DNA of 64,000 nt from Haliotis rufescens (taxonomy: Eukaryota), in NCBI RefSeq assembly GCF_023055435.1, contig NW_025964301.1, forward strand, positions 2,852,001 through 2,916,000, given 5' to 3'. A program made the position numbers and the translations under genes. Under the pieces are notes generated by a model. The model ran no database searches. It was not told where the DNA came from and worked only from the letters and a program-made list of their open reading frames with translations. This document shows positions 14,884 to 61,415 of this stretch, piece by piece; position 1 is the first letter of the stretch, and each line of letters begins with the position of its first letter.

Positions 14884-15554
14884 TCACATAAATGACGAAG
14901 ATTTACCACTTTGTCTCTTATATCTCTTGTGGATCAAGCGTTTGATTGCGTCGTGCATGTTTCTTCCTTTCTGTGATGATAAATCACAGGTTAAGTGGGT
15001 GTTAGGATAAAATCCACAATACGCTATGACCCAGAGAGGTTTATCAAACGGGAAGGGAGTTACAGATGTGACGAGTTTCTGTTTACTAAGGTCCAGGACA
15101 TGGACTGTATGTGTTTCCTCTTCAAGAACGAATCCCAAATCCAGGCTGTAAGTTGTACCACTCTCGTTCAGCGTAAGGTTGTCATGGGACAGATATAGTC
15201 CGTTGTTGTACACCTTTAGACATATTGCATTATGTTTTGCGCATGTTGCAAACAATACACTCAATCCAGTTGTTTGGGTCTTGTTAGCATGAACAGGGCT
15301 GCCAGTCAAAGCTGCTTCGAAGATAAAAGTATTGTAATCATATGGTTTTATGACAGAGTATGTGACCTCCATGCCATACATGATGGTCTGTCCTGGCCTG
15401 ATGACCAGAGGTGTTGATGTCAGGACAGAGGGAGATGCATGTAGTCGGCATCCTGTCCTTGGTGGAAGATGTTCTTGTTTGCCATTGGTGACAAATGGCC
15501 CCGAAACCGTCAGACCGTCACTTGCAATACTGGAGTCCCACTCCAGATCCGCAC
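14884..15554 (-). CDS. TRIM gene copy 2, coding exon 2: divergent PRY/SPRY (B30.2)-like domain; spliced product about 611 aa
   Basis: Acceptor TCTTCTCCCCAG|GT GCG GAT joins in frame to exon 1 (..VPE-G-ADLEWDSS..). LEWDSSIASDGLTVS resembles the PRY start. LGFVLEEETHTVHVLDL..KLV..FPFDKPLWV resembles the SPRY end (VGVFLDYE.G.LSFY..F..PLYP). Domain call is by eye, not by HMM. Confidence 0.82.
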
Positions 15555-16398
15555 CTGGGGAGAAGACATCGTTCGTATCAGGTGAATGCGTTTCCGTGTA
15601 TACAAACATCTGTACTAAATGTCATATTAGTGAGTGAATTGGGGTTAACACCGTTTTAACAGTAAACCAGTCATATCACGGCGTGTCAGCTTAATATGGG
15701 ATGAAAGTGTTATATATATATTGCTATGGTTTCCGTGAAGTTTAAGGATAGTGCTATATAGGTTAAAGTATAACATATCGGTGAATCAGAAAAGTACTAG
15801 TGAAATAAAACGAAAGTCTACCTGCCATATTTGGACAATGCTCAAACAATTGAAGGACATTTTGTATCAGATAGACTGACTTCAGCAGGGGTGTGTTAAT
15901 TACTTTTGAATGTGAAGTCGGAACATACTACAAATTCCGATTCCTAGAAACATATGCTTTGTAGTGAAATGAGTCAGTGAGTGATTTGTGTTTTATTACG
16001 CTTTTAACAGTATTCTAATTGTGGGAGGAAAGCCTGATGTGATGCAGGTCTCAGCTGTTTACCACTTTGGTGAAACCCTCGAGCACCGATATGGTGCTGA
16101 CAGACCTAGGAACACAATCGGGGCGAACCGGGATTCAAACCCACGATGATAGATATGTAGCGTAATCAAAGGACGCAACTCTGCAAGGGCGTATTAGACG
16201 ACCGCCAGCTGTTCATTTCGTTTCGCATGCGAGACACTAATCTACCCTTTCCAGATATACTGGTTTCAACAACATGTTTTATCATACTGAAATTGTACAT
16301 TTCTAAGAGAGATAACTTAAACTGGCACCTGTTTTAAGTTATGATCCAATTTGCTTGCAAAATATATCATGCTATCGCGATATGTCGGTGTGTTCTGT

Positions 16399-16433
<35 letters not shown>

Positions 16434-17392
16434 TTTTAAAGGAATTATGCTCACGACAAAATAAGGGAACTAATGAAATGATAGTGAAGGTGTAATGACG
16501 ATCAATGTCAATCTCTGGTGTGTCCACCCCACCCCACTATGTTGGGCGACACATGCACGATACCCGGATGGCGCTGTGGTGATTAACTTGCGTATGGTTG
16601 TCTTTGGTATTGCCCGCCATTCCGCTACCGCAAGAGCTACCCCTAGCTGGGCTGGATCATACCAAAAGACGTCAAAAGATTATACTTGTTGTTACCCTGC
16701 CTGGCGCTGTGCATTATGGGGCTAAAAGAAGGAATGGTCAGCTCGGATCCCGTAAAGTGCGTCTGAGTGGGGTATTCATGTTAAACTGCGGCCTGGTATC
16801 TCATTGGGCTAGAACAATAAAACCNNNNNNNNNNNNNNNNNNNNNNNNNNNNNNNNNNNNNNNNNNNNNNNNNNNNNNNNNNNNNNNNNNNNNNNNNNNN
16901 NNNNNNNNNNNNNNNNNNNNNNNNNNNNNNNNNNNNNNNNNNNNNNNNNNNNNNNNNAACATACACGTCCAAGCATGTCGATAAATAGGTGCAATAATCT
17001 TGGACGCGACGTTAAACCCCATCTCACATAACCTTACCTCAGGATTTCAGCAAGGATATGGCAGTTTTCTCTGGGGTAAGCCAACCTGGATACCAGTAGC
17101 TCTAAAATTCCTCGAACTGGCCGTCCCTCTGATGCACCCATGCCAACCACTCAATCTGAGTTACATGGTACGGAAGTGTCCAGTCGGAGTCGGACAAAGC
17201 CCACTACTGAGGGGATAGCCCTTCGGGTCCTCCAAAGAGCTCAGATGAATATCCAGCAGAGAATGGTTGGGAGCAGGCCAAACAACATCAGCCAATTCAT
17301 GGTAACTCTGCACAGGGGTATGGTAAATGTGTAAACTCATCCACCCAGGAGACCTTTGCATCAAGGTCTCTGTATTTGTCATCAGAAAAAGT

Positions 17393-17550
17393 GGGGCGGT
17401 CGGGTAGCCTAGTGGTTAAAGGTTTCGCTCGTCACGTCGAAGACCCGGGTTCGATTCCCGACATGGGTACAATGTGTGAAGCCCACTTCGTGTGTCCCCC
17501 GCCGTGATATTGCTGGAATATTGCTAAAAGTGGCGTAAAATCAAACTCAC
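17393..17550 (+). mobile_element. SINE family A in the TRIM intron (same insertion at about 49190-49352 and 62866-62980)
   Basis: A box TAGCCTAGTGG, B box GGTTCGATTCC, TSD-like TCATCAGA.AA on both sides. Confidence 0.88.
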
Positions 17551-19863
17551 TCATCAGACAAGGGTCACAGCCTCGTGTCCAGGGGATAACAAGGATAATA
17601 AAAGCTCTAGCATTGGGTCTGATGTGGAGAACCTTCTCCTGTCCAGATGGAATCCAGATACTATGATAATACCAACACCATGTCGCTCACATACCCTTGG
17701 GGATCAATGGAATGATAATACCAAAGAATTGGAATGTCGAAGATGATGGTCATGCCTCTAATGCCTGTCAGTGCGCTGGTGGGTCTCTGGGGTACAAAGA
17801 CTATTATGGACGAAGTCTCATGCTCAGTGCTCTAACAAACACAGGTGGATTTTACATATCCTGTCTGCATTTCGGACAATCTTTCCACGGATTTGCCAGA
17901 AGATTTTATGGAGCAACAGGTTGGTGCGGAGATTCTGCCAAGGAAGTGCTAATTAAGAAGCTTCCCACTATGTCTCCAACTTAGGTCTGAGGACACTGGG
18001 ACACGCTATTGATGCACAAGCAGTCTATTGCAGATCAACCATCCAAAGGGACGTGAAGCAGTTGCAGAGTCCTTGAACTGGACTCTCCAAGGGACAGATA
18101 ACCAATTAGCATACAATGTTATCAAACAGATCTTGCTGGTCAACAGAAGAGAAGAAGACTCAATTTTGTATTAAGGTTCTTTAGGGCTTCAGACTATTGA
18201 ACTGTTGAAAGAAACTGGTTTTTGAGCTGTAGCTCAATGTATGTGAATATGTTCTCTCCTTCTGATGCATGTGCAACAAGATCCATTGTGAGCTGATCTT
18301 AACAATGCATGGCGCGAGGCGACTGACCATTTTGTGGGGTGGTAGACGGTTCTTTCATCAATAGTTTGCATAATTTTAGCACTTGCTGACGGGTATTATG
18401 AAAAGTAGAAAATAGGCTTCCGGTGTTTTGATTGAAAATGTAAACATCAAGGAGAGGGGAAATCCCCGTGGCGGAATGCCTGATGACGTTATTCGACCCC
18501 ATGTGCTTATACATTAAACCAGAACCTCGCTGAACCAACCAAATGCAACAAATTTTGAGAAAGAAATACTTGAAAGAACAAAACCATTTGAATATTCTAT
18601 AGTGAAACAACAGCTGTGTCACTGTAAAATTAGTTCTTTAATCTGTTACGAACCAGCGGGGATGTGGGAGAAAGTACATGCATAAAGTCAGGTACCAGGG
18701 AATGAAGAATCATTTTGTTTTTGACTCAGTCAAAATTTACAAATGAAGAGTCAGTGTATAACAGTCTGATAACGAAAATGACGATTTTATCCAAATTGAC
18801 CCCGAAAAATCTTGAAAAAAATAGTTATGCCCCAGACTGTTGCATTCTTGCTGGGTGTTTTTTCAGAAGAAAAAAGAATCTTGTTTTACAGCAGTAATTT
18901 CCATACAAAATCCCGGATATCTAATGAGGGCTACGTGTGCGACATGTCTATGTGAATAAACAAATTGTTTGTGAGCATACAGAAAAAACATAAAGATGTA
19001 GCTGATGGATATGGCTACCTTGGAGATTAATTATCATTATCCGAATGATCAAATATTTAATGTAACAACTTTGAAGTCAGTCTAATTTACAAAACACGTT
19101 CATTAGTGCTGTACTTGTGCATTATTTGTATATCCGTGTCGATGTCAAACTCATTACAGGTCACACAGGCGATGTGTAGTGCATCTATAAGAGAATCAGT
19201 GATCAACAGAAAGTGCTAGTTTTAGACATCCTGGATGCAAAAACAGAGGTAACTGTGACTCTAACCCTACTGGAAACTGTTACGATTATGCGTGGGACAC
19301 CAAATACATATTTACATACTGTTTCATTTGGCAATCGACACCTAAAAATAGTGATTCATGAACACATGCTTGTGATATTGCCGGAATCGCATAAGAGACA
19401 TGCTTTTAGCAGAGGTTTCTTATGAAGATGGAAATGGCCTAGTCGTTTTTATTTACAACTTCAGTGTACTATGACTTTTTGAAGACACCACTCAATCTTG
19501 TAAAATTGTGACAGCTTTAAGAAAGAAACATTAAACATCTTTATACAGAATCATTTGGCATCACAGTAACTATTCAATTAACTTAAATTAATGAGGAGAG
19601 AACTCACATGACAAGCGATCCTTTTACTCCTCACGGCTGCCAGGTCATATATGCAGCTGTGGACACAAATGTGCTAAGATGACCTCAGTATCAATAGACA
19701 TGACGTACCATTATTACCATGTGTTTTTTTCACAGTTAATTTTGGGACAGTTTATAACTGTCAGATGTCTGCACAGTTTCGAAACAAAAAGCACAAAAAT
19801 ATCAAAATAGAGGAAGTGTCTTTAAGAAAATACTTGAATTAAAAATAATAACAGACTGATTAC

Positions 19864-21028
19864 CTTCTGGCACATACTCGTGTTCAATAGTCATTGCATC
19901 ATTCAAGGATTTATTTCCATTTGGATTCTCTATTGGTGAAAAGACAACTGATTTGACGAGACCAGCCATCTTCAACAAGGGGGTAATTTTACTGAAGCAA
20001 GTTGAAGCAAAGCTGACACCAGCTCTTCCAAGTGACGCCTTTGGTGACATCTGCAACATGGCGCTCAAGGTGGCAGCTGAAGACCCCATCATTTGTAGAT
20101 CCTCTATCTTGTCAGCTTTACTCCGCATCTGTCGTGTGTACTCGGTAGATGATGTCACTTTTGCCAGAATATTACTGGTGGAATCCAGTCCCTCCTGTGT
20201 CAGCTTCAGAATCTTGCTGGATCTCTCTTCAACATCTGACAACAGAATACCTCTCCTCTGCTGTATTTCATCAATCAATTCGTCAAAGGCTTTGTTGATG
20301 TCAACCACGGCAGCCTGTTTTGACACCTGTATGTTTGAATGTCTTTTCTTGAGATCTTGTTTTATTTCCTCAAGTCCCTCTGCCTTCTCCCTCAGCTTGA
20401 CTAAGGTATCGTCAATGGACTTTGCCTTTTCTTTGTGTGCTTCATCCACGGACACGACGTTGTGTCCCTTCCCTTCTTTGTGTTCTACTACAGTGCAGGA
20501 CACACAGACGATCTTTTCACAAGTGTAGCAGTAGAACTGTAGGGGTTGGTGATGTTGTGCACACTTATGGAGACGATTGAAACTTTTACCTGGTTGTTCT
20601 TTCATTTCTTTAAAACTGACAGTTTGGTGATCTCGCATCGGTTGAACTCTTTTGTGGGCATTTAGACATTCTTGGCACAGGAAGACGCCACAGTCATCAC
20701 ATCTGGACATGGCAGGGTTACCATCAGGACAATCTGTACATGGCAGATGAAGACCTTTCACAATCTTCAGATGATCCAGGATTCTTAGGATGATAGGCTC
20801 TTTGGGCAGAGACTTGACACCACCCGGCAGGTTATGTTGGTGTCGACACATGGGACATGATAACGTTGGGAGTCCTTGGCTGTACGTCTCTAGACAAGCC
20901 TGACATATTGACTGTACACAGCAGGGCATACGACGAGGTATTCGTCTGACCTCATCAAAGTGTTCAGTACATATTGGGCACTCGGTGAGAAGATCCTTGA
21001 TGGCGGACGCTGATACATAGTCCGACAT
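19864..21028 (-). CDS. TRIM gene copy 2, coding exon 1 (RBCC, 388 aa + 1 nt)
   Basis: Same protein as copy 1 but with intact CPIC. Donor GT at 19863-19862, phase 1, compatible with the acceptor at 15556-15555. Confidence 0.92.
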
Positions 21029-24000
21029 GGTTATCTGGAAATAAATTTAAAACATCTGAAGCATTTTCGGATTCCATGTGTAATCGTCTTTGTGTCTCGA
21101 CACAATTGGTACAAAGTCGTATGAGACACATCCATACTTGCATTGTATGTACATCACTCAAAACTGCTAGTAGCATTAAATTATGAGCTCGTTGTTTTAT
21201 TGATTTTAAATGTTGCTTATTACCACAACTCTCCCAATGCATAATAGAATAGAATATGCTATTGATTTAGGATCTATTTTCATATCATAAAATATAAGCC
21301 AGCTACACGATAAATCGCAAAGAACAATTGGAATGAAGCGTGGTTTATTTCACGATAAAACATTGTTCTACCATGACGTCATTTCTGGAGATTCAAACAT
21401 GCGCTCGCATCCTAATGAGGTCGTAAATTCGACGACGATATCTATTAGAGGGAAGTGTTTCGTGAGTTGTTCCCAATAGATGTAGCAGATAACGCAATGG
21501 CCGAACGATCGCATCAAAACGTGGGAGAGATATGACAATCGGTAATTGGAGAAAAGGTACAGATAAAAGACGTGAAACTTGTGAAAATACCCCTTTTAAT
21601 AAAATAGACTTGTCCGACATTGCCGATTTCGGAGTGTATTCAGTGAGTCATCATTATTTACATAAGGGTAAACCAATTGAGAGCATGTACATTGTATTAA
21701 GATCTTTAAAGAGGCTGGGCGAAATGTTGGTATCTCATCTAAGCAATTAACGACTCGTGGTCGATGTTTATCGCACAATTAAACACTGTGTCCCTAGTGG
21801 TTTATTCTCCCTGCAGTGTTTTAAAACAGAGAGGGAGCAACTTGCTCTTTTGATATGACGTATTGAGGCATTTTCTGTTGATTAACGCCGCACCCAAAGG
21901 CGGTTTTAAATGATGTAATGCACATAATCATATGTTCTTTTTATTGGTATATTTTATAGAAACCTAGCTCATTATATGTAACGATTGCCTTTTTAAACTT
22001 CAGTAACCTTGACCTCTCATCAACGTCAAACAAGGCCTATTTAACAAGACCCTTGTCCATGAAATCATGTATGTCCAGGAGTATCCTGGCATAAAATGTT
22101 CTTCTGGGCATAAACTTCTGTCATGGGGACCTTGACTTAACAGTCGGCCAGTCATATGTCATAAAGTTAACTTAAACGCACAAAAATTTTTTATGTCAGA
22201 TATGCAAATTCTACAGGTAAGCATGTATAACTATGAAGTGCACACATTTACATTGAAATATTCAACTGATTAGAGTACCTACGTTCTGACATCTGCAATA
22301 GTCATAGTCATTCCAAATCCTGACTGGGCTATACTCATTATTAAACCACTCTACTTGTAAATAATATTAATACAAGTCATTCCAAGTTAGGATGGAGCCC
22401 TATCCATGATCAAATTACATGGTGTGTACTATTCTAAGTTTGTCCACATGACGTTTTATAGTTCACATTCTTCCTACATCCAGAGAAAATGTAATTCTGA
22501 GCGTCTTCCGCCTAATACATGAATACTTCACACTAAGGTAAAAACATCCCTGAGAAGCACTACAACCAGAAGCCGACCTAGAGGTCACCGATTCACTACG
22601 CCCATTACTCCCTCAGTCAGCCTTACACCCGCAGATACCGGAGAGACAGAATTCCATCAAGGTCAGCTTGCCCAACCCGAGAGCTAAGAAAGGCTCTTGC
22701 TTGAAACACAGTGAGTCTGTTTGCCTGCACCGGGACTCCACGCAACCGAGGACAATTTACTACATGTAGCTACATGCAGAGCGGAAAGCAGTCAGATGTA
22801 ACGGCATAGACATAGACAGATGCACGTATTGAAAGTAGGTCATTCTGCACGGGCTACAATATCAGACATTTTCAAGATCAATGTATAACACTTACCACTC
22901 CTATTGGATATAATTTCAAAAAAGATCAACAAAAAAGATGAGGTATTGCATTCAGTAGTAAATGTTTGTGTTTGAGTGCATGGTCGTAGCTTTAAATTGT
23001 AATTGAGTTTGAAAGGACTATTATAGAATGGATTCAATGTGAATTTACTAACTATTGAAATCACTTCCTTCACTTGATATTTCCAACAGACAAGCAGTTC
23101 TCAGTAACTAGCCCTAACTGTGTTTTAGGCATATCAATATCAAAATCGCAATGATATGTCTCTGACATGAATGCAGAAGTAGTCATTATAGTCACGGGGT
23201 GGGTATTTTCGTTTTGATACAATATGCGTATGATATTTGAAGCATCTTAAAATAATTTGAATTCATATTGTAGTAGCAATCATTTACACTTGTCTATGCA
23301 CAGTCGAATCCCGTTGTGTCGAGCTCGGATGTGTTGAATGCCCGGTTGTGTCGAACCCACAGTCCTGGCCCGGCGAACTCGTGATATATTTATCACTATT
23401 TTAATCAGAATGTGTCGAATTTTCCGTAGTCACGAAATAAATGTGTAGTCCCAACATGCGTATTTGGCCCGTTTGCTTTCTGATGGCAAGTAAAGGGCTC
23501 AGGACAAGGAAGTAGTTATTCCCTTGTCGTTATAGTCATGGGGCAGGTAGCAGGTCTGTGACGTGTCTATTTTCGTTTTTATACAGATGTATATCACATT
23601 TGAATTCATGTTGTAGTGAATATAATTTTCACAGTTCTTTTATTAAGTACCGATTAAATGTACACTAAAACCACTTTGTTCCGTTTTACCTCCGTTTGTT
23701 TAATTGTTGTTTGGAAGAAGTTGTTGTAAGGAATAGAGTAATAATTTATTGTACAAAGGCACCCACCAAGGACAGACTACAATTTGTATCTACAATAAAA
23801 TGGCAATACATATGATACAAACGAGCATGCACACCGATTTACATCATACGTTCAAACGAATGTCCAAAATGAATAGTTAGCTGGCAGTGGTGAAGAAAAT
23901 GAATACTTTGTTTGGTGAAAAATGAATACCATAACATCACACAGTTGTGTCAGAAGTGAAAAAGAATAGATTAGTTGATGGTGCTCAGTAAACAAATAAT

Positions 24001-36752: not shown

Positions 36753-37632
36753 CTCGTGGGTCGTCCCCGAGTTGTGATTGCATTGTACATAAAGTCAAGT
36801 TGGACCTTCTCTGTTCTCTTTGTTGGCGAAAATGACAATTCTTTAACAAGACCAGTCATCTGTATATGTGAAGTTACTTTCTTAAAGCCCAGTGAGGCAA
36901 AGCTGACACCTTTCCTATCCACTGACACCTCTTGTGGTGTCTCGTCCAATATGGACTGGGGCGGTCGGGAAGCACAGGGGTTCAAGCGTTTGCTCGTCAC
37001 GCCGCAGACCCGGGTTCGATTTCCGACATGGGTATAGTGCGTGAAGTCCATTTCTGGTACCCCCCACCGTGGTTTTGCTAATATTGCCAAAAACGGCGTA
37101 AAACAACGGCTCATTCACCCCAATATGGACTTCAAAGAAGCAACCGAAGATCCTCTATCTGGTCATCCTTGCTCCTCATACGTCAGTTGAAGACTTCACT
37201 TTAGACAGCAATGCTTTCGTCGACTCAAATGCCTGTTCTGTTGGTTTCAGGACTTTATGTGACTTTGCGTCTACTTCTGAGAACATGGCGGCTTTCCAAA
37301 ACCTAAGTTCCTCCATCAGACTGTTGAAGGTTCTATTGATGTTTTCTTTAACATATCTCTTAATCCCCCAATATGGTCAGATTTCAACTTGAGACTTTCA
37401 GCCATCTGTTCCAGTGTTGCACCTTTTTACTTCTGATATCGTGAAGACATCCTCATATTCATCTGCCTTCAATTCGTGTTCGTTTTCAACACCTGCGACT
37501 TAGTGTCCATTGCCTTCTGAATGTTCCACCACTATACAGGAAACACAGATGACCTCATCACAAGTGTGGCAGTAGAACTGCAGAGGTTGGTTGTGCTGTA
37601 CACGCTGATGAAGTCTTTGATAAGTCTTAGCA
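36753..37632 (-). pseudogene. Old TRIM paralogue pseudogene, exon 1 remnant (B-box2, coiled coil, linker); RING and B-box1 not found
   Basis: Minus-strand translation KTYQRLHQRVQHNQPLQFYCHTCDEVICVSCIVVEHSEGNGH* (TAA 37502-37500), then frameshifted NINRTFNSLMEEL.., MRSKDDQIEDL and GVSFASLGFKKVTSHIQMTGLVK..FSP. SINE inserted at 36958-37119. Donor GAG|GTAAAT at 36752. Confidence 0.85.
36958..37119 (+). mobile_element. tRNA-derived SINE family A inserted in the TRIM pseudogene, 12-bp TSD
   Basis: Pol III B box GGTTCGATTTCC. TSD CCAATATGGACT at 36946-36957 and 37120-37131. Confidence 0.9.
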
Positions 37633-37715
37633 TAGCTATTTATTGTTGCTTAGAACATGCGATCAGTTTCTAAAGCTTGTATAACTTCTTAGTTTGTATG
37701 CAGAACCAAAAGGGG

Positions 37716-38702
37716 CCGATTTCACTACCTCCAACCTTTAACAGACGTATCTGAAATCCCATTTAAGTAGGTTTACATCCAACCTTTAACAATCGTATTT
37801 GAAATCCCATTTCAGTTGATCTACATCCAACCTTTAACCAACTTATCTGAAATCCCATTTAAGTACATGTGTAGATCTACATCCAACCTTTAACAGACTT
37901 ATCTGAAATCCGATTTCAGTTTATCTACATTCAACCTTAAACAAAGGTATCTGAAATCCCATTTAGGTAGGTCAACATCCAACCTTTAACCGACTTATCT
38001 GAAATCCGATTTCACTAGATCTACATCCAACCTTTAGCTGACTTATCTGAAATCCCATTTCAGTTTGTCAACATCCAACCTTTAACAGACGTATCTGAAA
38101 TCCCATTTCAGTAGGTCTACATCCAACCTTTAACAGACGTATCTGAAATCCCATTTCAGTAGGTCTACATCCAACCTTTAACAGACGTATCTGAAATCCC
38201 ATTTCAGTAGGTCTACATCCAACCTTTAACCGACGTATCTGAAATCCCATTTAAGTAGGTCTACATCAAACCCTCAACAGACGTATCTGAAATCCCATTT
38301 AAGTAGGTCTACATCCAAACTTTAACAGACGTATCTGAAATCCCATTTCAGTAGGTCTACATCCAACCTTCAACAGACGTATCTGAAATCCCATTTCAGT
38401 AGGTCAACATCAAACCCTCAACAGACGTATCTGAAATCCCATTTAAGTAGGTCTACATCCAACCTTTAACAGACGTATCTGAAATCCCATTTCAGTAGTT
38501 CTACATCCAACCTTTAACAGACGTATCTGAAATCCCATTTCAGTAGGTCTACATCCAACCTTTAACCGACGTATCTGAAATCCCATTTAAGTAGGTCTAC
38601 ATCCAACCTTAACAGACGTATCTGAACTCTCATTTCAGTAGGTCAACATCAAACCCTCAACAGACGTATCTGAAATCCCATTTCAGAAGGTCTACATCCA
38701 AC
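37716..38702. repeat. 48-bp tandem minisatellite, about 20 copies
   Basis: Unit CATCCAACCTTTAACAGACGTATCTGAAATCCCATTTCAGTAGGTCTA; 16-aa periodicity in ORF 38068..38250. Confidence 0.97.
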
Positions 38703-39098: not shown

Positions 39099-39760
39099 GG
39101 GCGGTCGGGTAGCCTGGTGGTTAAAGCGTTCGTTCGTCATGCCGAGGTGAGGTGAAATTGGGTTTAACGTCGCGTCCAAGATTATTGCACTTATATANNN
39201 NNNNNNNNNNNNNNNNNNNNNNNNNNNNNNNNNNNNNNNNNNNNNNNNNNNNNNNNNNNNNNNNNNNNNNNNNNNNNNNNNNNNNNNNNNNNNNNNNNNN
39301 NNNNNNNNNNNNNNNNNNNNNNNNNNNGCTGATGCCGATTTATAGTGCTAGCCCACTGAGATAACATGCCGCAGTTTAACATGAATACCCCACTCAGACA
39401 CAGTATACTGACTCCGAGCCGACCAGTCCTTGTTTTAGCCCCTTAATGCCGAGCGCCAGACAGGGTAACAACAAGTACCATCTTTTAACGTCTTTTGGTA
39501 TGACGCGGCCGGGAATCGAACCCCGGACCTCCCGCTCTCCGGGCGGACGCTCTACCACTAGACCACGGAGGCGGTCTCGTCACGCCGAAGATCCGGGATC
39601 GATTCCCGACATGGGCACAATGTGTGAAGCCCATTTCTGGTGTCCCCCGCCGTTATATTGCTGGAATATTGCTAAAAGTGGCATAAAACCTCACCCACTC
39701 ACTCACTCACTCACTCACTCACTCACTCACTCACTCACTCACTCACTCACTCACTCACTC
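39099..39760 (+). mobile_element. SINE family A split by a nested SINE B, ending in a long (CACT)n tail
   Basis: Head at 39099-39145 resumes at 39576. Confidence 0.88.
39146..39575 (-). mobile_element. Full-length tRNA-derived SINE family B (core resembles molluscan MESC/Meta SINEs); other copies near 11010-11340(-), 16640-17040(+), 27712-27810(+), 34620-35080(-), 40010-40335(+), 48545-48810(+), 62195-62490(+)
   Basis: Minus strand head TGGTCTAGTGGTAGAGCG..GGTTCGATTCCC, core GGCGCTCGGCATTAAGG..GACTGGTCGGCTCGG..CAGTGGGCTAGCACTATAAA, (CTCAC)n tail. TSD TCGTCA(C/T)GCCGA. Family name from memory. Confidence 0.85.
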
Positions 39761-39913
39761 TTTTATCTGAAATAGTTTTTGCCTGACATTATACCCTATG
39801 TTCTGGACACACATAGCACGTTCGTACTAATTCAAAATACATTTTGAAAGGATTGCTAGGCAAGCCATTCGTTTGATATGTTCACGGTGTGTGTGCGCGT
39901 CAATAAGTGCGTG

Positions 39914-39951
<38 letters not shown>

Positions 39952-47029: not shown

Positions 47030-47035
47030 TTTATT
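47030..47035 (-). terminator. Candidate polyadenylation signal AATAAA of TRIM copy 3 (ATTAAA at 14789-14784, AGTAAA at 60697-60692)
   Basis: Homologous position about 90 nt after the stop codon in three copies. Confidence 0.45.
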
Positions 47036-47120
47036 GGCATACAATGGTCACATTAAAGACGAAGTGTTATTTCTCTGTCTGCATCATCTGCTTGGCATCG
47101 TCAATCAGCTCGTTTTCCAG

Positions 47121-47752
47121 TTACTCGTGGATCAAGCTTTCGATTGCGTCATGCATGTTTCTGCCTTTCTGTGATGATAATTCACAGGTTAAGTGGGTGT
47201 TAGGATAAGATCCAAAATGAATCATGACCCAGAGAGGTTTATCAAACTGGAAGGGAGTTACAGATGTGACGAGTTTCTGTTGACTAAGGTCCAGGACATG
47301 GACTGTATGTTTTTCCTCTTCAAGAACGAATCCCAAACCCAGGCTGTAAGTTGCACCACTCTCGTTCAGTGTAAGGTTGTCATCGGACAGATAAAGTCTG
47401 TTGTAGTACACCTTTAGACATATTCCTTTATGAGCTGCGCATGTTACAAACAATACACTAAATCCAGTTGTTTGGGTCTTGTTAGCATCAACAGGGTTGT
47501 CAGTCAAAGCTGCTTCGAAGATAAGTTTATTGTTATCCTCTGGTGTCAAGACAGAGTATGTGACCTCCATGCCAAACATGATGGTCTGTCCTGGCCTGAT
47601 GACCAGAGGTGTTGATGTCTGGACTGTGCGAGGTGAAAGTAGTCGGCATCCTGTCCTTGGTGGAAGACGTTCTTGTTTGCCATTGGTGACAAATGGCCCC
47701 GAAACCGTCAGATCGTCACTTGCAATACTGGAGTCCCATTCCAGATCCGCAC
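47121..47752 (-). CDS. TRIM gene copy 3, coding exon 2 (SPRY-like); spliced product about 594 aa
   Basis: Acceptor TCTTCTCCCCAG at 47754-47753. Open frame ADLEWDSSIASDDLTV... continues without stops into ORF 47121..47579, ending IHE*. Confidence 0.82.
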
Positions 47753-49739
47753 CTGGGGAGAAGACACATCGTTCGTATCAGGTGAATGCGTTTCCGTCTA
47801 TACAAACAACTATACTAAATGTTATATTCGTATGTGAATCGGGTTAAACACCGTTTTAACAGTAGTTCAGTCATTTCACGACGTGTCAATTTAATGTGGG
47901 ATGAAAGTGTAATGTATATATTGCTATGGTTTCCGTGAATATTAAGGATGATACTATATGAATTAAAGTATAACATGTCGATAAATCAGAAAAAAATATT
48001 AATTTGATAAAATGAAAGTCTACCTGCCATATGTGGACAATTGAAGGACAACATTTAGTATCAGATAGGCTGACTTCAGCAGGGGTGTAGTAATTAGCTT
48101 TGAATGTGAAGTCAGAACATACTACAAATTCCGATTACTAGAAACATATGCTTTGTAATGAAATGAGTCAGTTAGTGATTTGGGTTTTATTATGCTTTTA
48201 ACAGTATTCTAGTTGTGGGAGGAAAACCCGAAGGGATGTAGGTCTCAGGGATGTATGTAGCGTACACAAGGGACGCAACTCTGCAAAGGCGTCTTAGACG
48301 ACCGCCAGCTGTTCATTTCGTTTCGCATGCGAGACACTAATCTACCCTTTCCAGATATATTGGTTTCCACATCATGTTTTATCATATGGAAATTGTACAT
48401 TTCCATGTGCGAGTTCTAAGGAAATATTCTACCGACATAAAATAAGGGAACTAAATGTCATGTAAATTATATCAATCTCTGTTGTGCCCATGTCGGGCGA
48501 CCTATACACGATACCCCGCCATTCTGCTACCACAAGAGCTACCCCTAGCTGGGCTGCATCATACCAAAATACGTTAAAAGATGGTACTTGTTGTTATCCT
48601 GCCTGGCGCTGTGCATTGTGGGGCTAAAACAAGGAGCGGTCTGAGTTGGGTATTCATGTTAAACTGCGGCATGGTATCTCAGTGAGCTAGAACAATAAAA
48701 CTGTCTGGAGTAGTACAATCAACCACACACACACACGTGCATGCATGTCGATAAATAGGTGCAATAATCTTGGACGCGACGTTAAACCCCATCTCACATA
48801 ACCTCATCTCAGGATTTCAGCAAGGAAATGGCAGGTTTCTCTAGGGTAAGCCAACCTGGAAACCAATAGCCCTAACAATCATGGAACTGGCCGTTCTCTG
48901 ATGCACCCATGCCAACCACTCAATCTGAGGTACATTGTACGGGTGTGTCCAGTCGGAGTTCTAGGAAAAAGCTCACTACTGAGGGGATTGCCCCTCGGGT
49001 CCTCCAAAGTGCTCAGATGAGAATCCAGCAGAGACATGCTCTAATCCTTGGGTATGGAGAATGGTTGGGGGCAGGCCAAACAAAATCAGCCAATTCATGG
49101 TAACTCTGCCCAGGGGTTTGGTAAACATGAAAACCCATCCACCCACGAGACCTTTGCATCAAGGTCTCCGTATCTGTCATCAGAAAAAGTGGGACGGTCG
49201 GGTAGCCTAGTGGTTAAAGCGTTCGCTCATCACGCCGAAGACCCGGGTTCGATTCCCGACATGGGTACAATGTGTGAAGCCCATCATTTCTTGTGTCCCC
49301 CGTCGTGGTATTGCTGGAATATTGCTAAAAGCGGCATAAAATCAAACTCACTCATCAGAAAAGGGTCACAGCCTCGTGTCTGGAGGTGAACTGCTGGAGG
49401 ATAATAAAATCTCTAGCATTTGGTCTGTTGTGGAGAACCTTCTTCTGTCCAGATGGAATCCAGATCCTATGATAATGGCAACACCATGTCGCTCACATAC
49501 CCATAGGCACCAATAGAATGATAATACCAAAGAGGATTATCCTTGGAATGTCGAAGATGATGGTCATGCCTCTAATGCCTGTCAATGCGCTAGTGGGTCT
49601 CTGGGGTACTAAGACTATTATGGACGAAGCCTTATGGATCAGTGCTCTATCAAACACAGGTGGATTATACACATCCTGTCTGCATTTCGGACAATTTTGG
49701 GGGATTTCAACCGTTGCTTGAGAAATCGTTTATCTTAAT

Positions 49740-50240
49740 GAGGATCCAAAAGGCACAGACGAATGATTTGCAACACTTGTTTTCCGTGAAATTTCACTGC
49801 TTCAACCACTCCCAGCAATAGAATGAGGATATGCTGGATATGCTGTGTTACTGTCTCATGGGTGAAGCAGCTGACTTCTTCCCCTTGTTTCTAGAGAAGG
49901 ATGAGTACATCGGCTTCAATGAAAATATCAAGAAACGCAAAAGGCGGTTTGGAAGATGATTTACTGCAGTTTTTCATCAGGCCTCGGATGAATCACTGGA
50001 AGAATGGTTGGAGCGGGTACAGCAAGGAGAAAATGCAGCCTTTACGGATTTGCCAGGAGACTTTATGGAGCAACGGGTTGGTGCGGAGATTCTGCCAAGG
50101 AAGTGCTAATTAAGAAGGTTCCCGCTTTGTCTCCAACGTAGGTCTGAGGACACTTGGACACGCTATTGATTCACAAGCAGTCTATGGCAGATCAACCATC
50201 CAAAGGGACGTGAAGCAGTTGCAGAAAGACTCTCCAAGAG
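49740..50240 (+). mobile_element. Degenerate Ty3/Gypsy gag-like remnant in the TRIM intron (also about 63400-63820, partial at 17885-18070 and 1-115)
   Basis: Frameshifted pieces LCYCLMGEAADFF..KRRFG, Q..DESLEEWLERVQ, AAFTDLP, VRRFCQG and AID..AVYG follow the invertebrate Gypsy gag pattern. Confidence 0.6.
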
Positions 50241-50378
50241 ACAGATAACCAATTAACATACAATGTTATCAAACAGATCTGGCTGGTCAACAGAAGAGAA
50301 GAAAATTCAATGGACTGTATTTTGTATTAAGGTTCTTTAGGGCTTCAGACTATTGAACTGTTGAAAAAAACTAACAAT

Positions 50379-50983
50379 TGTAGTAAAAGATTGTGCGTTG
50401 TGGACATTGATTAGTTGTCATGAATGTAGTACTATTTAATGTAAGCAGTAGTGAGAAAGTTATTATATTTAGATGCTAGTGTGATGTGTAAACTACCGGA
50501 ATACCGTGGATTGTGATAAAGTGTAATAGAAACATGTAGAATATTCTATGTTGTGATGACACTGTGAGGAAATTTCCAGTAGCTAGTCAGACAGGATATA
50601 AGGGGAAGAGCGTGCCTCTAGTATCTCTCATACATCAAGTCTAGCTTTCGTGTGAAGATCACTCATCACCCAGGATTACCTGCCTAGGCCGTCCCAGAAG
50701 CTTGACCATTGTCACCATTGGGTGAAGATAGTATTATCACTGACTTTTGCTATCACCACTGTAGTTTTGTATTTGATACTTACCACTGTCATCATTTTAC
50801 ATACTGTCATTGAATATTGTACGACCACCATATTGTGTACTGTCATTGTAATTACTATGAAGTAATTTGTATTGATTTGTAAACCTAGTCAATGTTGTAA
50901 TACATTTGTTGATTGTATACCATTTGTTGGTTGTCTGTTGTTTTGACACTGAGTTCTTTTAAATACATATTTCTTGGTTAACA
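50379..50983 (+). mobile_element. Probable solo LTR (about 605 bp); a second copy starts at about 63972
   Basis: TG...CA ends (TGTAGTA..GTTAACA), internal TATA-like GATATAAGGGG, imperfect 4-bp TSD CAAT/CACT. Absent from copies 1 and 2. Confidence 0.5.
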
Positions 50984-51589
50984 CACTGTTTCAATTTGGA
51001 AATCGACACGTAAAAATAGTGATTAATAAACACATGGTTGTGATATTGTCGGAATCACATAACAGATCTGCTTTTAGCAGAGGTTTCTTATGATCATGGA
51101 AATGGTGTTGTCGCTTTTATTTACAACTTCAGTGTACCATGACTTTTTGAAGACACCAATCAATGTTGTAAAATTGTGACAGGTTTTAGAAAGAAACATC
51201 TTTATACAAACTCATTTGACATTACAGTAACTATTCAAGTAACTTAAATTAGTGAGGAGAGAACTTCATTGCAGTGAACAGTTGTACTGCACTTCGTGAT
51301 GCTCTCCACATCAATAAAGAAACCTGAGGGTGAACTCACATGCGAGCGATCCTTTTACTCCCAACGGCTGCCTGGTCATATATGCAGCTTAGGACACAAA
51401 TGTGTTAGGGTGACATCAGTATCAATAGACATGACGTGCCATTATTACCATGTGGTTCACAGTTATATTGGGATAGTTTATAACCGTCAGACGTCTGCAC
51501 AGTTATGAAACAAAATGCACAAACATATCAAAATAAAGGAAGTGTCTTTAAGAAAATACTTGAATTTAATTAAAGTACAGAATGATTAC

Positions 51590-52742
51590 CTTGTGGCACT
51601 TGGTCGTGTTCAAAAGTAATTGCATCGTTCAGGTCATCATCTCTACTTGGTGAAAAGAAAACTGATTTGACGAGGCCAGCCATCTTCAACAAGGGGGTAA
51701 TTTTACTGAAGCAAGTTGAAGCAAAGCTGACACCAGCTCTTCCAAGTGACGGCTTTGGTGACATCTCCAACATGGCGCTCAAGGTGGCAGCTGAAGACCC
51801 CATCATTTGTAGATCCTCTATCTTGTCAGCTTTACTCCGCATCTGTCGTGTGTACTCAGTAGATGACGTCACTTTTGCTAGAATATTACTGGTGGAATCC
51901 AGTTCCTCCTGTGTCAGCTTCAGAATCGTGCTGGATCTCTCTTCAACATCTGTTAACAGAATGCCTCTCCTCTGCTGTATGTCATTAATCAATTCGTCAA
52001 AGGCTTTGTTGATGTCAACCACGGCAGCCTGTTTTGACACCTGTATGTTTGAATGTCTTTCCTTGAGACCTTGTTTTATTTCCTCAAGTCTCTCTGCCTT
52101 CTCCCTCAGCTTGACTAAGGTATCGTCAATGGACTTTGCCTTTTCTTCGTGTGCTTCATCCACGGACACGACGTTGTGCCCCTTCCCTTCTTTGTGTTCT
52201 ACTACAGTGCAGGACACACAGAAGATCTTTTCACAAGTGTAGCAGTAGAACTGTAGGGGTTGGTGATGTTGTGTACACTTATGGAGACGATTGAAACTTT
52301 TACCTGGTTGTTCTTTCATTTCCTTAAAACTGACAGTTTGGTGATCTCGCATCGACTGAACTCTTTTGTGGGCATTTAGACACTCTTGGCACAGGAAGAC
52401 GCCACAGTCATCACATCTGGACATGGCAGGGTTACCATCAGGACAATCTGTACATGGCAGATGGAGACCTTTCACAATCTTCAGATGATCCAGGATTCTT
52501 AGGATGATAGGCTCTTTGGGCAGAGACTTCACACCACCCGGCAGGTTATGTTGGTGTCGACACATGGGACATGATAACGTTGGGAGTCCTTCGCTGTACG
52601 TCTCTAGACAAGCTTGACATATTGACTGTACACAGCAGGGCATACGACGAGGTATCCGTCTGGCCTCATCAAAGTGTTCTGTACATATTGGGCACTCGGT
52701 GAGGAGGTCCTTGATGGCGGACGCAGATACATAGTCCGACAT
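51590..52742 (-). CDS. TRIM gene copy 3, coding exon 1 (RBCC, 384 aa + 1 nt)
   Basis: ORF 51570..52742, about 95% aa identical to copy 2 over the first 365 aa. Phase-1 donor CAAG|GTAATC with GT at 51589-51588. Confidence 0.9.
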
Positions 52743-55700: not shown

Positions 55701-56385
55701 CACATACTCACCTCAAATATCCTGCTGTATGGTTGGACTTCCTGGATCAACAATACTGTTGTGTAGCCCGCGAGGCCACCTGTGTATACATATTGTTTGA
55801 CAACCATATATCTTAACTGTAGTGTACCTGTACAGTGTTATTACCTGATGTACATACATGTCGGTGTACCGGACATTGGATGAGGTCAGTGAAATTACTT
55901 ACCTGTTGATGTTTGGCAAAAGTCAGTTTTCACACCTAGCCCAGGAACTGTGCTTCCAAAGAAACCTGTTGACGCTATTATAGGCATGCGCAGTATCTAT
56001 TTTCGATTTGAACTGACCTACACTACTATTGTATCCTTGAAGGGACAAGCAAGACCCAACTAACTCACTCAGACAATCGACGAGGTTTAACCCACAGTCG
56101 TAGCTACCTTAGGGGGTATGTATGCTCATTTGTAACTGTGAATGGGTTCAATACCTTGGTGCAAAGACCGTTCACTGTTTCTTGATCAGGTTTTTCACTG
56201 ATATCAATCTACACATGTCTTAAGCTATATAGCAATTAAATGTTTAATGTTAGCATATAGGTCTAGTTGATTGCATTTGTTAATAGGCGTTTGTTGTATT
56301 TCAACCCTTCGGGAAAAAAGACATTGGGTATTGCAAAGCGACAAATCAAGTTGAAGAACGTCTCTGTCTGTTTTCTTCCTCAAAG

Positions 56386-56422
56386 AAGATAAGCCAGCAG
56401 ACTTATCTCCCTTTTCGACTGA
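56386..56422 (+). pseudogene. Third, internally deleted copy of the RPLP2-like terminal exon
   Basis: AAGATAAGCCAGCAG joined to ACTTATCTCCCTTTTCGACTGA, with flanks homologous to 9150-9530. Confidence 0.6.
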
Positions 56423-59400
56423 ACATCACGTGACTTTGTTCCCGAGGGTGGCACCACGATCTTCTACGGTTCAGAACAGAACAACATGGGGCAATGAGCA
56501 GCTTCACCGTGTGCAGCATACATTGTCCGATGTGTGATGTACAGGATTAGGAATATTGAAACTGAATGTGCAAAACCAAAGACAATTTGAATCACGGCGG
56601 TGTCATTGTCGGATCTCTTCGCATCTGTTGAACAGTTTGATAGAATGTATTTATTCCATTCAGTGAATCAGTTTTTAGACTGTTTTGTTGAATCCGTCCT
56701 CATGATACATTACTTGTTTGTAAAAAGTACGGTTGTTTGAGGGTGCCAACCCCCTCCTCCCATGAATCCCCAATGCCATCTATTTTTTCACTCTGAGTCT
56801 CAATTTCTTACCCCGAATCCTAAATACTCATAAAACAAATCTTAAAAACATTGAGAAAAGTCCGATTTCATGTAAACCTACTCGAAAAATACCCCCCTCA
56901 ATTTTATTTATATATACGTGTATGTAAAGGAAATGTTTGCGTCGTCCATTATTGATTTAAAAATGTTGAATCTGCGTACCAAATACGTAACACATCCCGC
57001 GTACTACACTGCCGAGTCCCGAATATCTTCTAAATAGACCCCTGAATCCTGCTAACAGAAGGGGGATGGCAGCCTATTGTATTGTAATACATTATGCGAA
57101 ATGTCAGTCAATAGTATGGTATAAGATGTGTTAAATCTCTCTGTGGTATGATATGATAGGTGATACTCATCGTGCAATACATGATATATTACCCTCAATA
57201 TTGTGGAATAACACGATAAACGCTGCTCAAAGTAAGGTATATGGATAGACGACACGTAATGGGTTATAAAACATGACACACTCTTCTCAAAGTAAGGTAT
57301 CGCAAGATACGCGACGCTGAATTTGTGGTTTAAAATGATTGCACTCCATGGTGTGGTATAACATGACGCACTCTACTCAAAGTAAGGTATAGCAAGATGC
57401 ACGGCACGCAATGATGCCCCAAATTTTGATTTATCGTTTCAGAAAGAACTTTTCATTTCCATGACAATATGTTAACATTTCAACAAGCTCAACCTCCCCG
57501 TTTACATGTGCATTATGTCCCTTTGTTACTGTGTGGTACAATGTGTCGTAGGTGAAAGTATTTTTCATTTTTGTAATGCAACATTTCCAGAGCCCAAGTT
57601 TGCCTGATTAACACGGAGAGTACAAAACGATAAGTGTCTGTTGTTTTTCACTTATAGGTAGAATGGGTGAGCGTGTGAGTGAGTGAGTGAGTGAGCACTC
57701 GAGTGAGTGAGTGATTGAGCACTCAGCAATATTCCAGCTATATGTCGCGGGTCTGTAAATTATCGAATCTGGACCAGACAATCCAGTGACTGACATCATG
57801 AGCATCGATCAACGCAGTTGGGACACGATGACATGCATCAACCAAGTCACCGAGCCTGACCATCCGATCCCATTAGTCACCTCTTACGTCAAGCATAGTC
57901 GCCTTTCACCCCGGATCTTCACGTGTCGAGTGAGTGCATTACAATATTCTTTAATAGTATTTCAAAACTTATTGTAAGACTACTCACTGACTCAACGACA
58001 ATGCAATCAAGGTTGTGCTATTTACAGTAAGCATTAATATCAAACAACCTATTTCAAACTTTCCACGAGCCGAAATATCACAAAACTAAAAACCAACATT
58101 TTATATTTTATTTCACACAATTGATTAGCATAGATATATTGACTATAATAAAAGATGATAGTATGGATGTACATTGGTTGTTTATTTCATGTACTTTTCT
58201 TTTCAAAATATAAATTCAACTAAGCAAATAGATGCTCATACAATACAATCAACGAAATCCTTTCCTTTTGGCGAAATCTTTTAACAACCAAACTATACTA
58301 GCTAGGTGTTTCATTGACAAAAGCTCAACATAGTTTTGATTTCTTTGAACATTCCATGATATCATCTATCTACATCTGCAGAAGTGAAAAAAACCCACAC
58401 CCAAATAATAAACTTAAGAACAAGTTGATCACTTGTTGAATGTGTATATAAAATGGCACAATAAATATTTAACAGCCTATGGGTTATATTCCGGAATAAA
58501 ATCAAACCTTCAGTTCCACATGAGTCCGATTTGCTACCATGGAAACGCAAAACATTGTGAACTTATAAAAGTACTGCATGGACAATTGCACTTTCAGCAT
58601 TGTACCAGTGTGTATACAAAGCTTCAGTGTTTACTCAGGAACTGCCTTTTAGAACAAATGCCGGTGGTGACAGTGAATTGAAAAATGTCTTATTCAGAAA
58701 AGGTTTAAACGAGGATCCAAAATGCCGATGTGGCAGCCCCTGTGGAAATTCATATACTTTTTTCATTGAATGTCCTTTATTTAAATCAGATAGAAACGAA
58801 TTGATGCACTCACTATTTTTGTTTCGTGAAAGATGCTTGTGATGTAAATATTGACCTGATGCTAGTTGGCAATGCAATTTTACCTTATTATGTGAACAAA
58901 AACATATTTAGGAATGTACATACACATATAAAGTAAACAAAAAGGTTTGAGTTAGCAATGTGATTATACATACGTTTCTCTATAAATAAGCATGCAATCT
59001 ATGGGAGAGGGCGTTCTAAGTTATGATATCTTGTGCCCAATCCTTTTCATGAGAATGTAATATGTTTAAACTTAAACTAAACAAATGCCGGTGAAACCGA
59101 ATCAACGAGGAAAAACCTGGAAGAGAGGCATTTGAAACTATATTTAAAAAAAAAGATGCACAGCAACGCCGGGTCAAAGACCTTCCAAAATAAAAACAAG
59201 CCGACATTTCTTCGAGGATTCAAGCCCTGTGTGCTGTCTTGAAAAGGCAAACAAACACATCAACACCGCGACAAAACATCGTGAAATAAACATAACTGAC
59301 AAAACTTCTATAATCACACTATAAAAATTGATGTCCAATCTATAAATCTACTGTAAACGTTAAAAGAATGCATGTCAACATTAAGAATAATACATATGAT

Positions 59401-60783
59401 GATACTACCACACATGTAGAAATAGCGATAAATGTTGTACGGTTCAAGTTTGTATTGCTTCAATCGTCATTAAAGCGTACGTACAATATCTTCAGAAATT
59501 ATCTCGCAAGAAATATCGCCCTCATTATTGTAGCCATTTTGTTAATAGAAATAGTGGAATATGTAGCGCCTTAAAATATACTTAATACTTTTCATAAAGA
59601 GTCTGAATGTATACAACACATGCCGATTTATACCAAAAGAAAACTTTGAACACATTTGCAGCGTTTGTATTTGTCCAAAATTATCATAGCCAGATACTTG
59701 GGACAGAATAACACCTATATAAATTACGTCGCTACTGAAACGGAAAGCATATCCAAACAACAACAGATCATGTGACACTAACCATGTAAGAATACACAAT
59801 GCCTGCTGTACAGTCTGCTGGCCTCATTCATATAGAATATACATAACGATATCAGTTTCACATGCTGCAAGATGGATACTGTAAAACTAACAACGGAGTT
59901 ACTTCACAAGCAGTCAACACTATGAAAAACCCCATTGGTGGAACCAGAGACCATATAATAGATTCTATTATAAGGTCTCTGGTTGAACATTTGTGAACTC
60001 CCAAAACCTGTGTGTTTGTTGTTTAACGCCGCACTCAGCAATATTCCTGGTATATAATCGAGTGTGGGCCAGGCAGACCAGTGGTTGATATTATGAGCAA
60101 CATTCCACGGCGGCGGGGTACGTTGGTATGCCATCAATTGAGTCACCGAGCCTGACAACCCGACCCATTAAGTCACTTCTTACGACCAGCATAGGTTGCT
60201 AGGGATCAAATCTAACCCCGTATCCAATGAAAGGACAATAAGTGTTTCAACATCAAATAATGAACACACAAATGGGCGCTAACGTACCGCTATTCACTGA
60301 CAACTGAAGCCATGTAAGAAGTTGTGACGTTTCATATTTACTCATTTCCTGGGCCTATAATGGCCACATCAATAATGAAATGATTGATCATCTTATTGGT
60401 GTTCAAGTTTGTGCATGAGCTTACCGGACACAAGACAGTGATTTGCATGAATGTACTACTATCTATACAACCTTGTTTACGTGGTCACCATTATGGCTTA
60501 CAAAGTAGACACAATTTATTGATAACACTTTCTTTAATACTGTAAAGGTATAAATCCTCCTACCGTTGTCAAGCAAGGATCTATACCGAAACGTCGCCTT
60601 TACAGTATCAAAGAAGTTGGTATTCATAAATTGTGTCTACTTTGTCATCCGTCAACTTCTAAGTAATGCCTATCTAACAATTCATTATGGCTTTACTGGC
60701 ATACAATGGTCACATTTCAAGGCGAAGTATTATTTCTCTGTCTGCATCATCTGCTTGGTATCGCCAATCTGCTCGTTTTCCAG

Positions 60784-61415
60784 TTACTCGTGGATCAAGC
60801 GTTTCATTGCGTCATGCATGTTGATTCCTTTCTGTGATGATAATTCACAGGTCAAGTGGGTGTTAGGATAAGGTGCAAAAAGAGTCATTACCCAGAGAGG
60901 TTTATCAAACGGAAAGGTAGTTACAGATGTGACGAGTTTCTGTTGACTAAGGTCCAGGACATGGACTGTATGTGTTTCCTCTTCAAGAACGAATCCCAAA
61001 TCCAGGCTGTAAGTTGCACTACTCTCGTTCAGTGTAAGGTTGTCATCTGTCAGACGTTGTCCGTTGTAGTGCACCTGTAGACATATTCCATTATGAGCTG
61101 GGCATGTTGCAAAGAATACACTCAATCCAGTTGTCTGCTGCTTGTAAGCATCAACAGGGTTGCCAGTCAAAGCTGCTTCGAAGATAAAAGTATTGTTATC
61201 ATATGGTGTAATGACAGAGTATGTGACCTCCATGCCGTACATGATGGTCTGTCCTGGCCTGATGACCAGAGGTGTTGATGTCAGGAGTCTGTTAGATGAA
61301 AGTAGTCGGCATCCTGTCCTTGGTGGAAGATGTTCTTGTTTGCCATTGGTGACAACTGGCCCCGAAACCGTCAGTCCGTCACTTGCAATACTGGAGTCCC
61401 ATTCCAGATCCGCAC
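60784..61415 (-). CDS. TRIM gene copy 4, coding exon 2 (SPRY-like); exon 1 expected right of the window
   Basis: Acceptor at 61417-61416. Open frame ADLEWDSSIASDGLTVSGPVV... into ORF 60784..61242. Intron sequence homologous to copy 3 continues to 64000. Confidence 0.8.

Follow-up and report, generated by a model that had tools for sequence, protein, structure and literature searches.

Background

Several vertebrate TRIM families join a RING-B-box-coiled-coil (RBCC) scaffold to a B30.2 (PRY-SPRY) domain with positively selected loops. In teleost fish the finTRIM (ftr), btr and TRIM35-like genes (class IV) carry the B30.2 domain behind the RBCC on a single exon, have undergone large, tandem, lineage-specific expansions and show selection, by the M1a/M2a site models, in the variable loops (VL) of B30.2, including VL1, the beta2-3 loop (PMC2657112, PMC3137616). 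In primates, TRIM5alpha and the TRIM5/6/22/34 cluster are coiled-coil TRIMs with positively selected B30.2 patches, which in TRIM5alpha (v1 to v4) set target specificity; the cluster evolves by tandem duplication and loss, and also yields shorter isoforms without B30.2. Group 2 TRIMs, those with a fast-evolving SPRY, have been reported as absent in invertebrates (Sardiello 2008, PMC2533329), and canonical B30.2 TRIM-like genes as scattered in some of them (Boudinot 2011, PMC3137616). Here we describe a stretch of 64,000 nucleotides of the red abalone Haliotis rufescens (scaffold C523:2852001-2916000, hereafter the window), which is probably a segment of a Haliotis-lineage tandem array of three-exon TRIM E3-ligase genes with a diversifying B30.2 domain.

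The abalone family shares with the teleost families the order of the domains, the B30.2 domain on one exon, the large and apparently lineage-specific tandem expansion and the selected loops, VL1 among them; in both groups the B30.2 exon has been shuffled to another immune scaffold, NLR in fish and TIR in abalone. It differs from finTRIM in belonging to a protostome (a gastropod), in having two B-boxes and a cassette micro-exon in the linker, and in a B30.2 domain that goes undetected in Pfam, PDB-sequence and hhalign searches. No sequence similarity to vertebrate class IV B30.2 domains was detectable, and the fold alone fits descent or independent recruitment. With the primate cluster the family has in common the coiled-coil plan, the selected patches, duplication with loss and shorter products without B30.2, but it is far larger (at least 74 last-exon copies vs a handful), and its hot spots include the beta5-6 loop/beta6 zone (residues 84-103).

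The best structural matches of the abalone domain are TRIM16, TRIM25, TRIM65 and Riplet (R-B1-B2-CC-PRYSPRY; Z 17.5-18.4), some of which have two B-boxes as well; their identity to it is only 11-16%, and because the Z scores of the PRY-SPRY matches spread over less than 1, no specific orthology can be claimed. These four belong to 'group 1 subgroup E', a subgroup with no invertebrate members (Sardiello 2008, PMC2533329), and TRIM65 and Riplet bind their targets via VL1, VL3, VL4 and VL6 (bioRxiv 10.1101/2020.08.26.268649). TRIM45 also has a RING, two B-boxes and a coiled coil, but there a filamin/Ig repeat follows the coiled coil, and none is present in the window proteins. In the literature on abalone and mollusc TRIM-B30.2 expansions we found no description of the Haliotis family or of its B30.2 nature. 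An earlier reading of the window from its letters (the sequence-only reading) had held that an ORF-level annotation would miss these genes; RefSeq in fact lists them already, as TRIM45-like or TRIM33-like, and what appears to be new is the cryptic, diversifying B30.2 domain of this mollusc family.

Results

A cryptic PRY-SPRY domain in the last exon

All searches and structure predictions were run exon by exon. Sequence searches gave little for the last exon. Pfam returned no match at E<=1 for the three last exons of the window (PF00622 SPRY and PF13765 PRY included) and none at E<=10 for 20 last-exon family members; a profile of the last-exon family had 0 matches among PDB sequences at E<=10, and its comparison by hhalign with canonical SPRY exons of the same genome gave a probability of 0.05%. 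Only 18 relatives were present among 1.84 billion representative proteins; the sources of 10 of them were looked up, seven being Haliotis, and two weak matches coming from Gigantopelta and Argopecten.

Structure prediction gave a clear answer. The AlphaFold2 (AF2) model of the last exon, with 39 family sequences as input, is a 13-strand beta-sandwich with a C-terminal helix (predicted local distance difference test, pLDDT, 88.7; predicted template modelling score, pTM, 0.85). Every one of the 50 Foldseek matches listed for this model is a B30.2/PRY-SPRY domain. In VIA-align, residues 1-194 of the model aligned with full-length PRY-SPRY chains at Z 16-18.4 and a root-mean-square deviation (rmsd) of 2.3-3.2 Å, the best being TRIM16L, TRIM65 and TRIM25 (Z 18.4, 2.3-2.5 Å over 160-165 residues). 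As modelled, the last exon is a complete, sequence-cryptic PRY-SPRY domain, recognised by structure prediction only, and the SPRY/B30.2 beta-sandwich that the sequence-only reading expected is supported by the model.

Two other molluscan proteins carry relatives of the domain. In H. asinina XP_067655290.1 a TIR domain (residues 28-144) is followed by the same cryptic B30.2-like domain (376-522; hhalign probability 96.3%, E=2e-9), which has therefore been shuffled onto an immune-signalling scaffold. The scallop protein Argopecten irradians XP_069111397.1, named 'TRIM45-like', combines an RBCC and a filamin repeat with a distantly related form of the domain (E=5e-4; residues 405-483 and 553-694). 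The latter protein hints that the Haliotis family may derive from a TRIM45-type ancestor by loss of the filamin repeat.

Gene layout

Four TRIM genes lie in the window, two of them partly outside it, together with one decayed relic. They are part of a 12-gene array on scaffold C523, which spans 2.735-2.931 Mb. RefSeq proteins of H. rufescens match the exons in the window at 100%. The window contains three RBCC exons and three intact last exons, all on the minus strand, as follows (window positions, unless the scaffold is given):

C523:2848986-2849612, just upstream of the window: gene D, last exon
1652-1700, minus: gene D, defective micro-exon, 49 nt with an in-frame TGA
1909-3072, minus: gene D, coding exon 1 (RING-Bbox1-Bbox2-coiled coil); Ser replaces the second RING cysteine (residue 20)
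14884-15554, minus, stop codon included: gene A, last exon, cryptic PRY-SPRY, 222 aa, with the C-terminal tail KRYKRQSGKSSSFM
19608-19656, minus: gene A, defective micro-exon, 49 nt instead of 48, TGA at 19631-19633
19864-21028, minus: gene A, coding exon 1 (RBCC, 388 aa + 1 nt), GT donor at 19863-19862
35122-37634, minus: decayed TRIM relic with several stops; B30.2-like fragment at 35122-35328, RBCC-like fragments at 36749-37114 and 37176-37634
47121-47752, minus: gene B, last exon (PRY-SPRY, 209 aa + stop), 100% to XP_048241248.1 residues 402-610
51340-51387, minus: gene B, micro-exon (phase 1-1, 48 nt) with the peptide AAYMTRQPLGVKGSLAC, between an AG acceptor and a GTGAGT donor
51590-52742, minus: gene B, coding exon 1 (RBCC, 384 aa + 1 nt)
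60784-61415, minus: gene C, last exon (PRY-SPRY), 100% to XP_048241246.1 residues 406-614
C523:2917189-2918337, past the window end: gene C, RBCC exon

Gene B is complete in the window, its three exons corresponding exactly (100%) to XP_048241248.1 (610 aa). The splice junctions proposed earlier, 19864/15554 and 51590/47752, do have GT/AG signals and compatible phases.

Selection on the two large exons

The hand counts of the sequence-only reading turned out to be exact: genes A and B differ at 17/364 positions in the first 365 RBCC columns and at 40/209 in the last exon. When the last exons of the window are aligned, 56 columns vary among the three copies, 31 of them within the 44 residues of the four patches proposed earlier, a test that is circular in that the patches were defined from the same three copies. 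In a sliding window over nine distinct array copies, nonsynonymous variation (pN) peaks at residues 37-45, 68-77, 84-123 and 174-184. The four patches are thus real pN peaks, but the variable zone is wider than had been drawn, residues 84-103 being equally variable.

Pairwise ratios of nonsynonymous to synonymous divergence (dN/dS, Nei-Gojobori) range from 1.1 to 2.3 in the last exon and from 0.3 to 0.7 in exon 1. Site models were fitted with a Goldman-Yang codon likelihood written in Python, which reproduced the iqtree log-likelihood to two decimals. The results for the C523 array and for a subfamily in a second cluster (C57) were as follows, 2dlnL being twice the log-likelihood difference:

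C523 last exon, M0: omega 1.95; omega=1 rejected, p=9e-4
C523 last exon, M2a vs M1a: 2dlnL 66, p=5e-15; 17% of sites at omega 9.4
C523 exon 1, M0: omega 0.54; omega=1 rejected (below 1), p=1.7e-5
C523 exon 1, M2a vs M1a: 2dlnL 9.07, p=0.011; 2% of sites at omega 5.4
C57 subfamily last exon, M0: omega 1.13; omega=1 not rejected, p=0.5
C57 subfamily last exon, M2a vs M1a: 2dlnL 46, p=9e-11; 12% of sites at omega 5.7

When the C523 last exon was cut into thirds, each analysed on its own tree, the selection signal was significant in all of them (p=0.003, 6e-7 and 0.01). The per-site pN profiles of C523 and of the independent C57 cluster are correlated (rho 0.32, p=8e-6). In the patches dN is 0.25, that is, 2.4 times the mean intron divergence of 0.105, which speaks against simple relaxation and does so independently of the noisy dS. 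The expectation of dN/dS above 1 at the patches therefore holds in C523, both for the variable patches and for the whole domain (M0, M2a). Judged from the codons, the RBCC scaffold is under purifying and the B30.2 exon under diversifying selection.

Position of the selected sites

Sites with a posterior >0.9 are residues 40-42, 68, 71, 75, 76, 84, 92, 100, 105, 106, 120, 177 and 178 in C523, and 90, 91, 94, 100, 115, 120, 181, 184 and 187 in C57. They were assigned to structural elements by numbering the 13 strands of the model in order. The loops that hold them are beta2-3 (VL1), beta4-5, beta5-6, beta6-7 and beta12-13, the beta5-6 loop, beta6 and the beta6-7 loop together making up 'VL3-beta6-VL4'; the strands are beta3, 5, 6, 7, 8 and 12, with one further site in beta13. 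In B30.2 domains the concave sheet that binds ligands is built from beta3, beta5-8 and beta12, and critical residues group in VL1, VL3-beta6-VL4 and VL6 (PMC10643145). Eight distinct selected sites fall within strands, seven in those of the concave sheet and one in beta13, a bias with a binomial p of about 0.025 (hand calculation) against the 44:49 split of strand residues between the sheets. The strand order of the model thus supports placing these sites on the concave side, where B30.2 domains bind ligands, in agreement with the earlier expectation that the patches share one face.

The RBCC exon

The RING of exon 1 has eight cysteines at residues 17-61. The Pfam RING models scored below their cut-offs (zf-RING_2, 24.3 bits vs 27.3). 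In the AF2 model the RING superposes on those of TRIM2, TRIM32, TRIM23 and TRIM21 (rmsd 1.6-2.4 Å, 27-34% identity), TRIM2 giving 1.6 Å. Both B-boxes were found by Pfam, PF22586 at residues 97-136 (33.8 bits, cut-off 27) and PF00643 at residues 152-194 (E=1e-14, 54.8 bits, cut-off 24.1), and B-box1 of TRIM28 superposes on the model at 0.8 Å. The modelled coiled coil consists of a helix at 194-304 and return helices at 307-325 and 343-353; PF25600 (TRIM_CC) scored 22 bits on it, under the cut-off of 30. Over about 350 columns the model of gene B exon 1 aligns with the KAP1 RBCC (tripartite motif; AF2 and Foldseek, E=2e-8). Exon 1 is thus predicted to fold as a complete RING-Bbox1-Bbox2-coiled-coil scaffold.

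The filamin repeat PF00630 had no Pfam match in the exon-1 or last-exon proteins. The TRIM45 identity implied by the RefSeq name was rejected for want of a filamin domain, 'TRIM45-like' being a nearest-name label only.

A micro-exon between the large exons

Between the two large exons, about 200 nt downstream of exon 1, sits a conserved micro-exon of 48 nt (phase 1-1), whose peptide, AAYMTGQPLGVKGSLAC, is identical in five of the nine readable array copies. RefSeq models include it. The two-exon model of the sequence-only reading (611 aa) has to be corrected here, as it misses the micro-exon found in gene B and in the RefSeq models. The direct junction between exon 1 and the last exon corresponds to skipping of the micro-exon, with the reading frame kept. 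In a relative from H. rubra, two annotated isoforms of 646 and 632 aa differ exactly at this exon.

In genes A and D the micro-exon has 49 nt (a +1 frameshift) and a TGA, and RefSeq therefore models RBCC-only proteins of 396 and 363 aa. Inclusion in gene A gives the 396-aa RBCC-only protein (XP_048241267.1 or XP_048241266.1). The 611-aa product would at best be a skipped isoform, and for gene A skipping would be the sole route to a full-length protein.

Family size and history

Genome-wide, there are at least 74 last-exon copies and 93 RBCC matches. C523 contains 12 last-exon copies and C57 more than 45; the larger clusters of the family are C57 (20.26-22.2 Mb) and C615. Many C57 copies form equal-score pairs with about 247 kb between the members, pointing to a large segmental duplication that took in an entire sub-array.

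In an RBCC tree built on a partial sample, the C523 clade comprises only H. rufescens and H. cracherodii and is sister to single sequences of H. rubra and H. asinina, so the expansion looks lineage-specific. The H. cracherodii annotation fuses two neighbouring array genes into models of 1245 and 1239 aa, probably a read-through mis-annotation of the orthologous array.

Damaged members of C523 include two RBCC exons with stops or frameshifts and three last exons that stop early. The birth-and-death evolution proposed earlier finds its counterparts in this array, where a relic, defective copies and very recent duplicates occur together. The most recent pair is genes D and A: window positions 1-5915 and 17957-23899 are 98.3% identical over about 5.9 kb, with a period of 17,956 bp. 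Either the locus was duplicated in tandem very recently, or the assembly has set two haplotypes one after the other.

Discussion

The results are best accounted for by the array of TRIM genes proposed at the outset. Each gene consists of an exon for RING, B-box1, B-box2 and coiled coil, a 48-nt cassette micro-exon in the linker and a PRY-SPRY exon. Diversifying selection on the PRY-SPRY exon centres on five zones: VL1, the loop beta4-5, VL3-beta6-VL4, the hairpin of beta7 and beta8, and the beta12-13 region. New copies arise by tandem duplication, exchange segments and decay, as illustrated by genes A and D, with their broken micro-exon, and by the relic at 35-37.6 kb. Dimers formed through the coiled coil could carry a pair of variable B30.2 heads for fast-evolving ligands inside the cell, which would most plausibly be proteins of pathogens, and the RING might then ubiquitinate the target or trigger signalling, as in TRIM5alpha, TRIM21 and finTRIM. 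By analogy, the role would most likely be intracellular recognition in defence, since architecture and evolution match those of TRIM5alpha, finTRIM, btr and TRIM35, and since the domain also follows a TIR.

Several points weigh against this interpretation. In the codon models the branch lengths could change only by one common factor, and the site posteriors are naive empirical Bayes. The paralogues recombine, with discordant tree topologies between the thirds of the last exon, and the likelihood-ratio tests of the site models may therefore be inflated. In the C523 last exons dS of the framework is 0.045, about two-fold below that of the patches (0.10) or the divergence of the introns (0.105), a pattern which suggests that gene conversion may homogenise the framework while the loops keep their diversity. 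Two of the four window genes (A and D) are defective at the micro-exon. The 'one face' placement was derived from the order of the modelled strands rather than from coordinates. Finally, the all-cysteine ligand pattern of the RING is unusual and stays below the Pfam cut-offs, and ligase activity is assumed.

Three other explanations were considered. That the assembly has created part of the array, with genes D and A as two haplotypes of one locus set in tandem across gaps, is rather unlikely, although their 98.3% identity, the protein-identical last exons and a scaffold with six N gaps in the window would all fit. Ten other array copies are 7-19% diverged and cannot be haplotypes, a third A-type copy (g2735) lies 113 kb away, and the question touches only the copy number, not the nature of the family.

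Diversifying selection may also be real while the ligands are not those of pathogens, and be driven instead by fast-evolving endogenous targets such as transposon or retroelement, reproductive or self/non-self proteins. The sequence data identify no ligand, the DNA around the array genes is rich in repeats, SINE-like (short interspersed element) ones included, and the reproductive proteins of abalone are textbook examples of positive selection. The proteins have no signal peptide, so that their targets should be intracellular, which leaves room for such ligands too. We nevertheless regard this explanation as improbable: in H. asinina the same domain is fused to TIR, an immune-signalling module, and every well-studied multigene family of RBCC-B30.2 proteins with selected loops is antiviral or immune (PMC2657112, PMC3137616, PMC2533329).

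The least probable alternative is relaxed constraint, in which the array would consist mostly of duplicates in decay and the last exon would owe its high dN/dS to neutral drift. It would accommodate a whole-exon dN (0.099) close to the intron divergence, the broken micro-exons of genes A and D, the two frameshifted or stop-bearing RBCC exons, the three last exons that stop early, the relic, and the C57 whole-domain omega, which does not differ from 1. Pure neutral decay is nonetheless very unlikely as the main explanation, given that omega is significantly above 1 in C523, that M2a beats M1a, which includes a neutral class, in both clusters, that patch dN exceeds intron divergence, that hot spots recur at the same positions in C523 and C57, that framework residues are invariant across subfamilies only 35% identical, and that the alignment of 11 last exons contains a single 3-nt deletion and no indel that shifts the frame, whereas in the introns as much as half of the alignable length is lost.

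Taking the diversified TRIM array further, we offer a broader proposal tentatively, as one that may well prove wrong. Abalones may have independently built a germline-encoded, diversified repertoire of at least 70 intracellular receptor genes by mounting a sequence-orphan B30.2 domain on a TRIM E3 scaffold, and occasionally on a TIR adaptor, as a protostome counterpart of TRIM5 and finTRIM; its loops could recognise viral or intracellular-bacterial proteins, and the micro-exon could switch between full-length receptors and RBCC-only regulators.

If the reading of the array is right, a large TRIM family is expanding in tandem in a mollusc, under loop-focused diversifying selection, and fast-evolving RBCC-B30.2 TRIMs are no longer a vertebrate speciality. 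Domain databases are blind to the family because its B30.2 domain has diverged beyond sequence recognition, and Pfam-based censuses of immune genes in invertebrates would undercount such receptors. In abalones, a group that is both farmed and threatened, the genes are concrete candidates for resistance to abalone herpesvirus or withering syndrome, and the family could serve as an independent replicate for the study of B30.2 surface diversification.

Other features of the window

None of the six N gaps touches a coding exon. The gap at 16825-16957 lies inside the second intron of gene A, where the sequence to either side keeps the order and strand seen in the gene B and gene C introns. Three others, at 32750-32953, 34669-34909 and 39198-39327, fall between genes.

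A minisatellite rich in TC/TG and about 4 kb long (28613-32741; 72-bp unit, about 43 copies, 81% matches) reaches the gap at 32750 and accounts for the long spurious plus-strand open reading frames (ORFs) at 28455-33057. A second tandem repeat (37725-38702; 48-bp unit, 20 copies, 87% matches) adjoins the TRIM relic. A dispersed repeat with an ORF reading ...HAEDPGSIPDMGTMCEAHFWCPPPLYCWNIAKSGIK occurs at 10392-11009 (minus), 39446-39775 (plus) and 49048-49389 (plus), and is probably a SINE-like or other mobile element scattered in the introns and spacers of the array.

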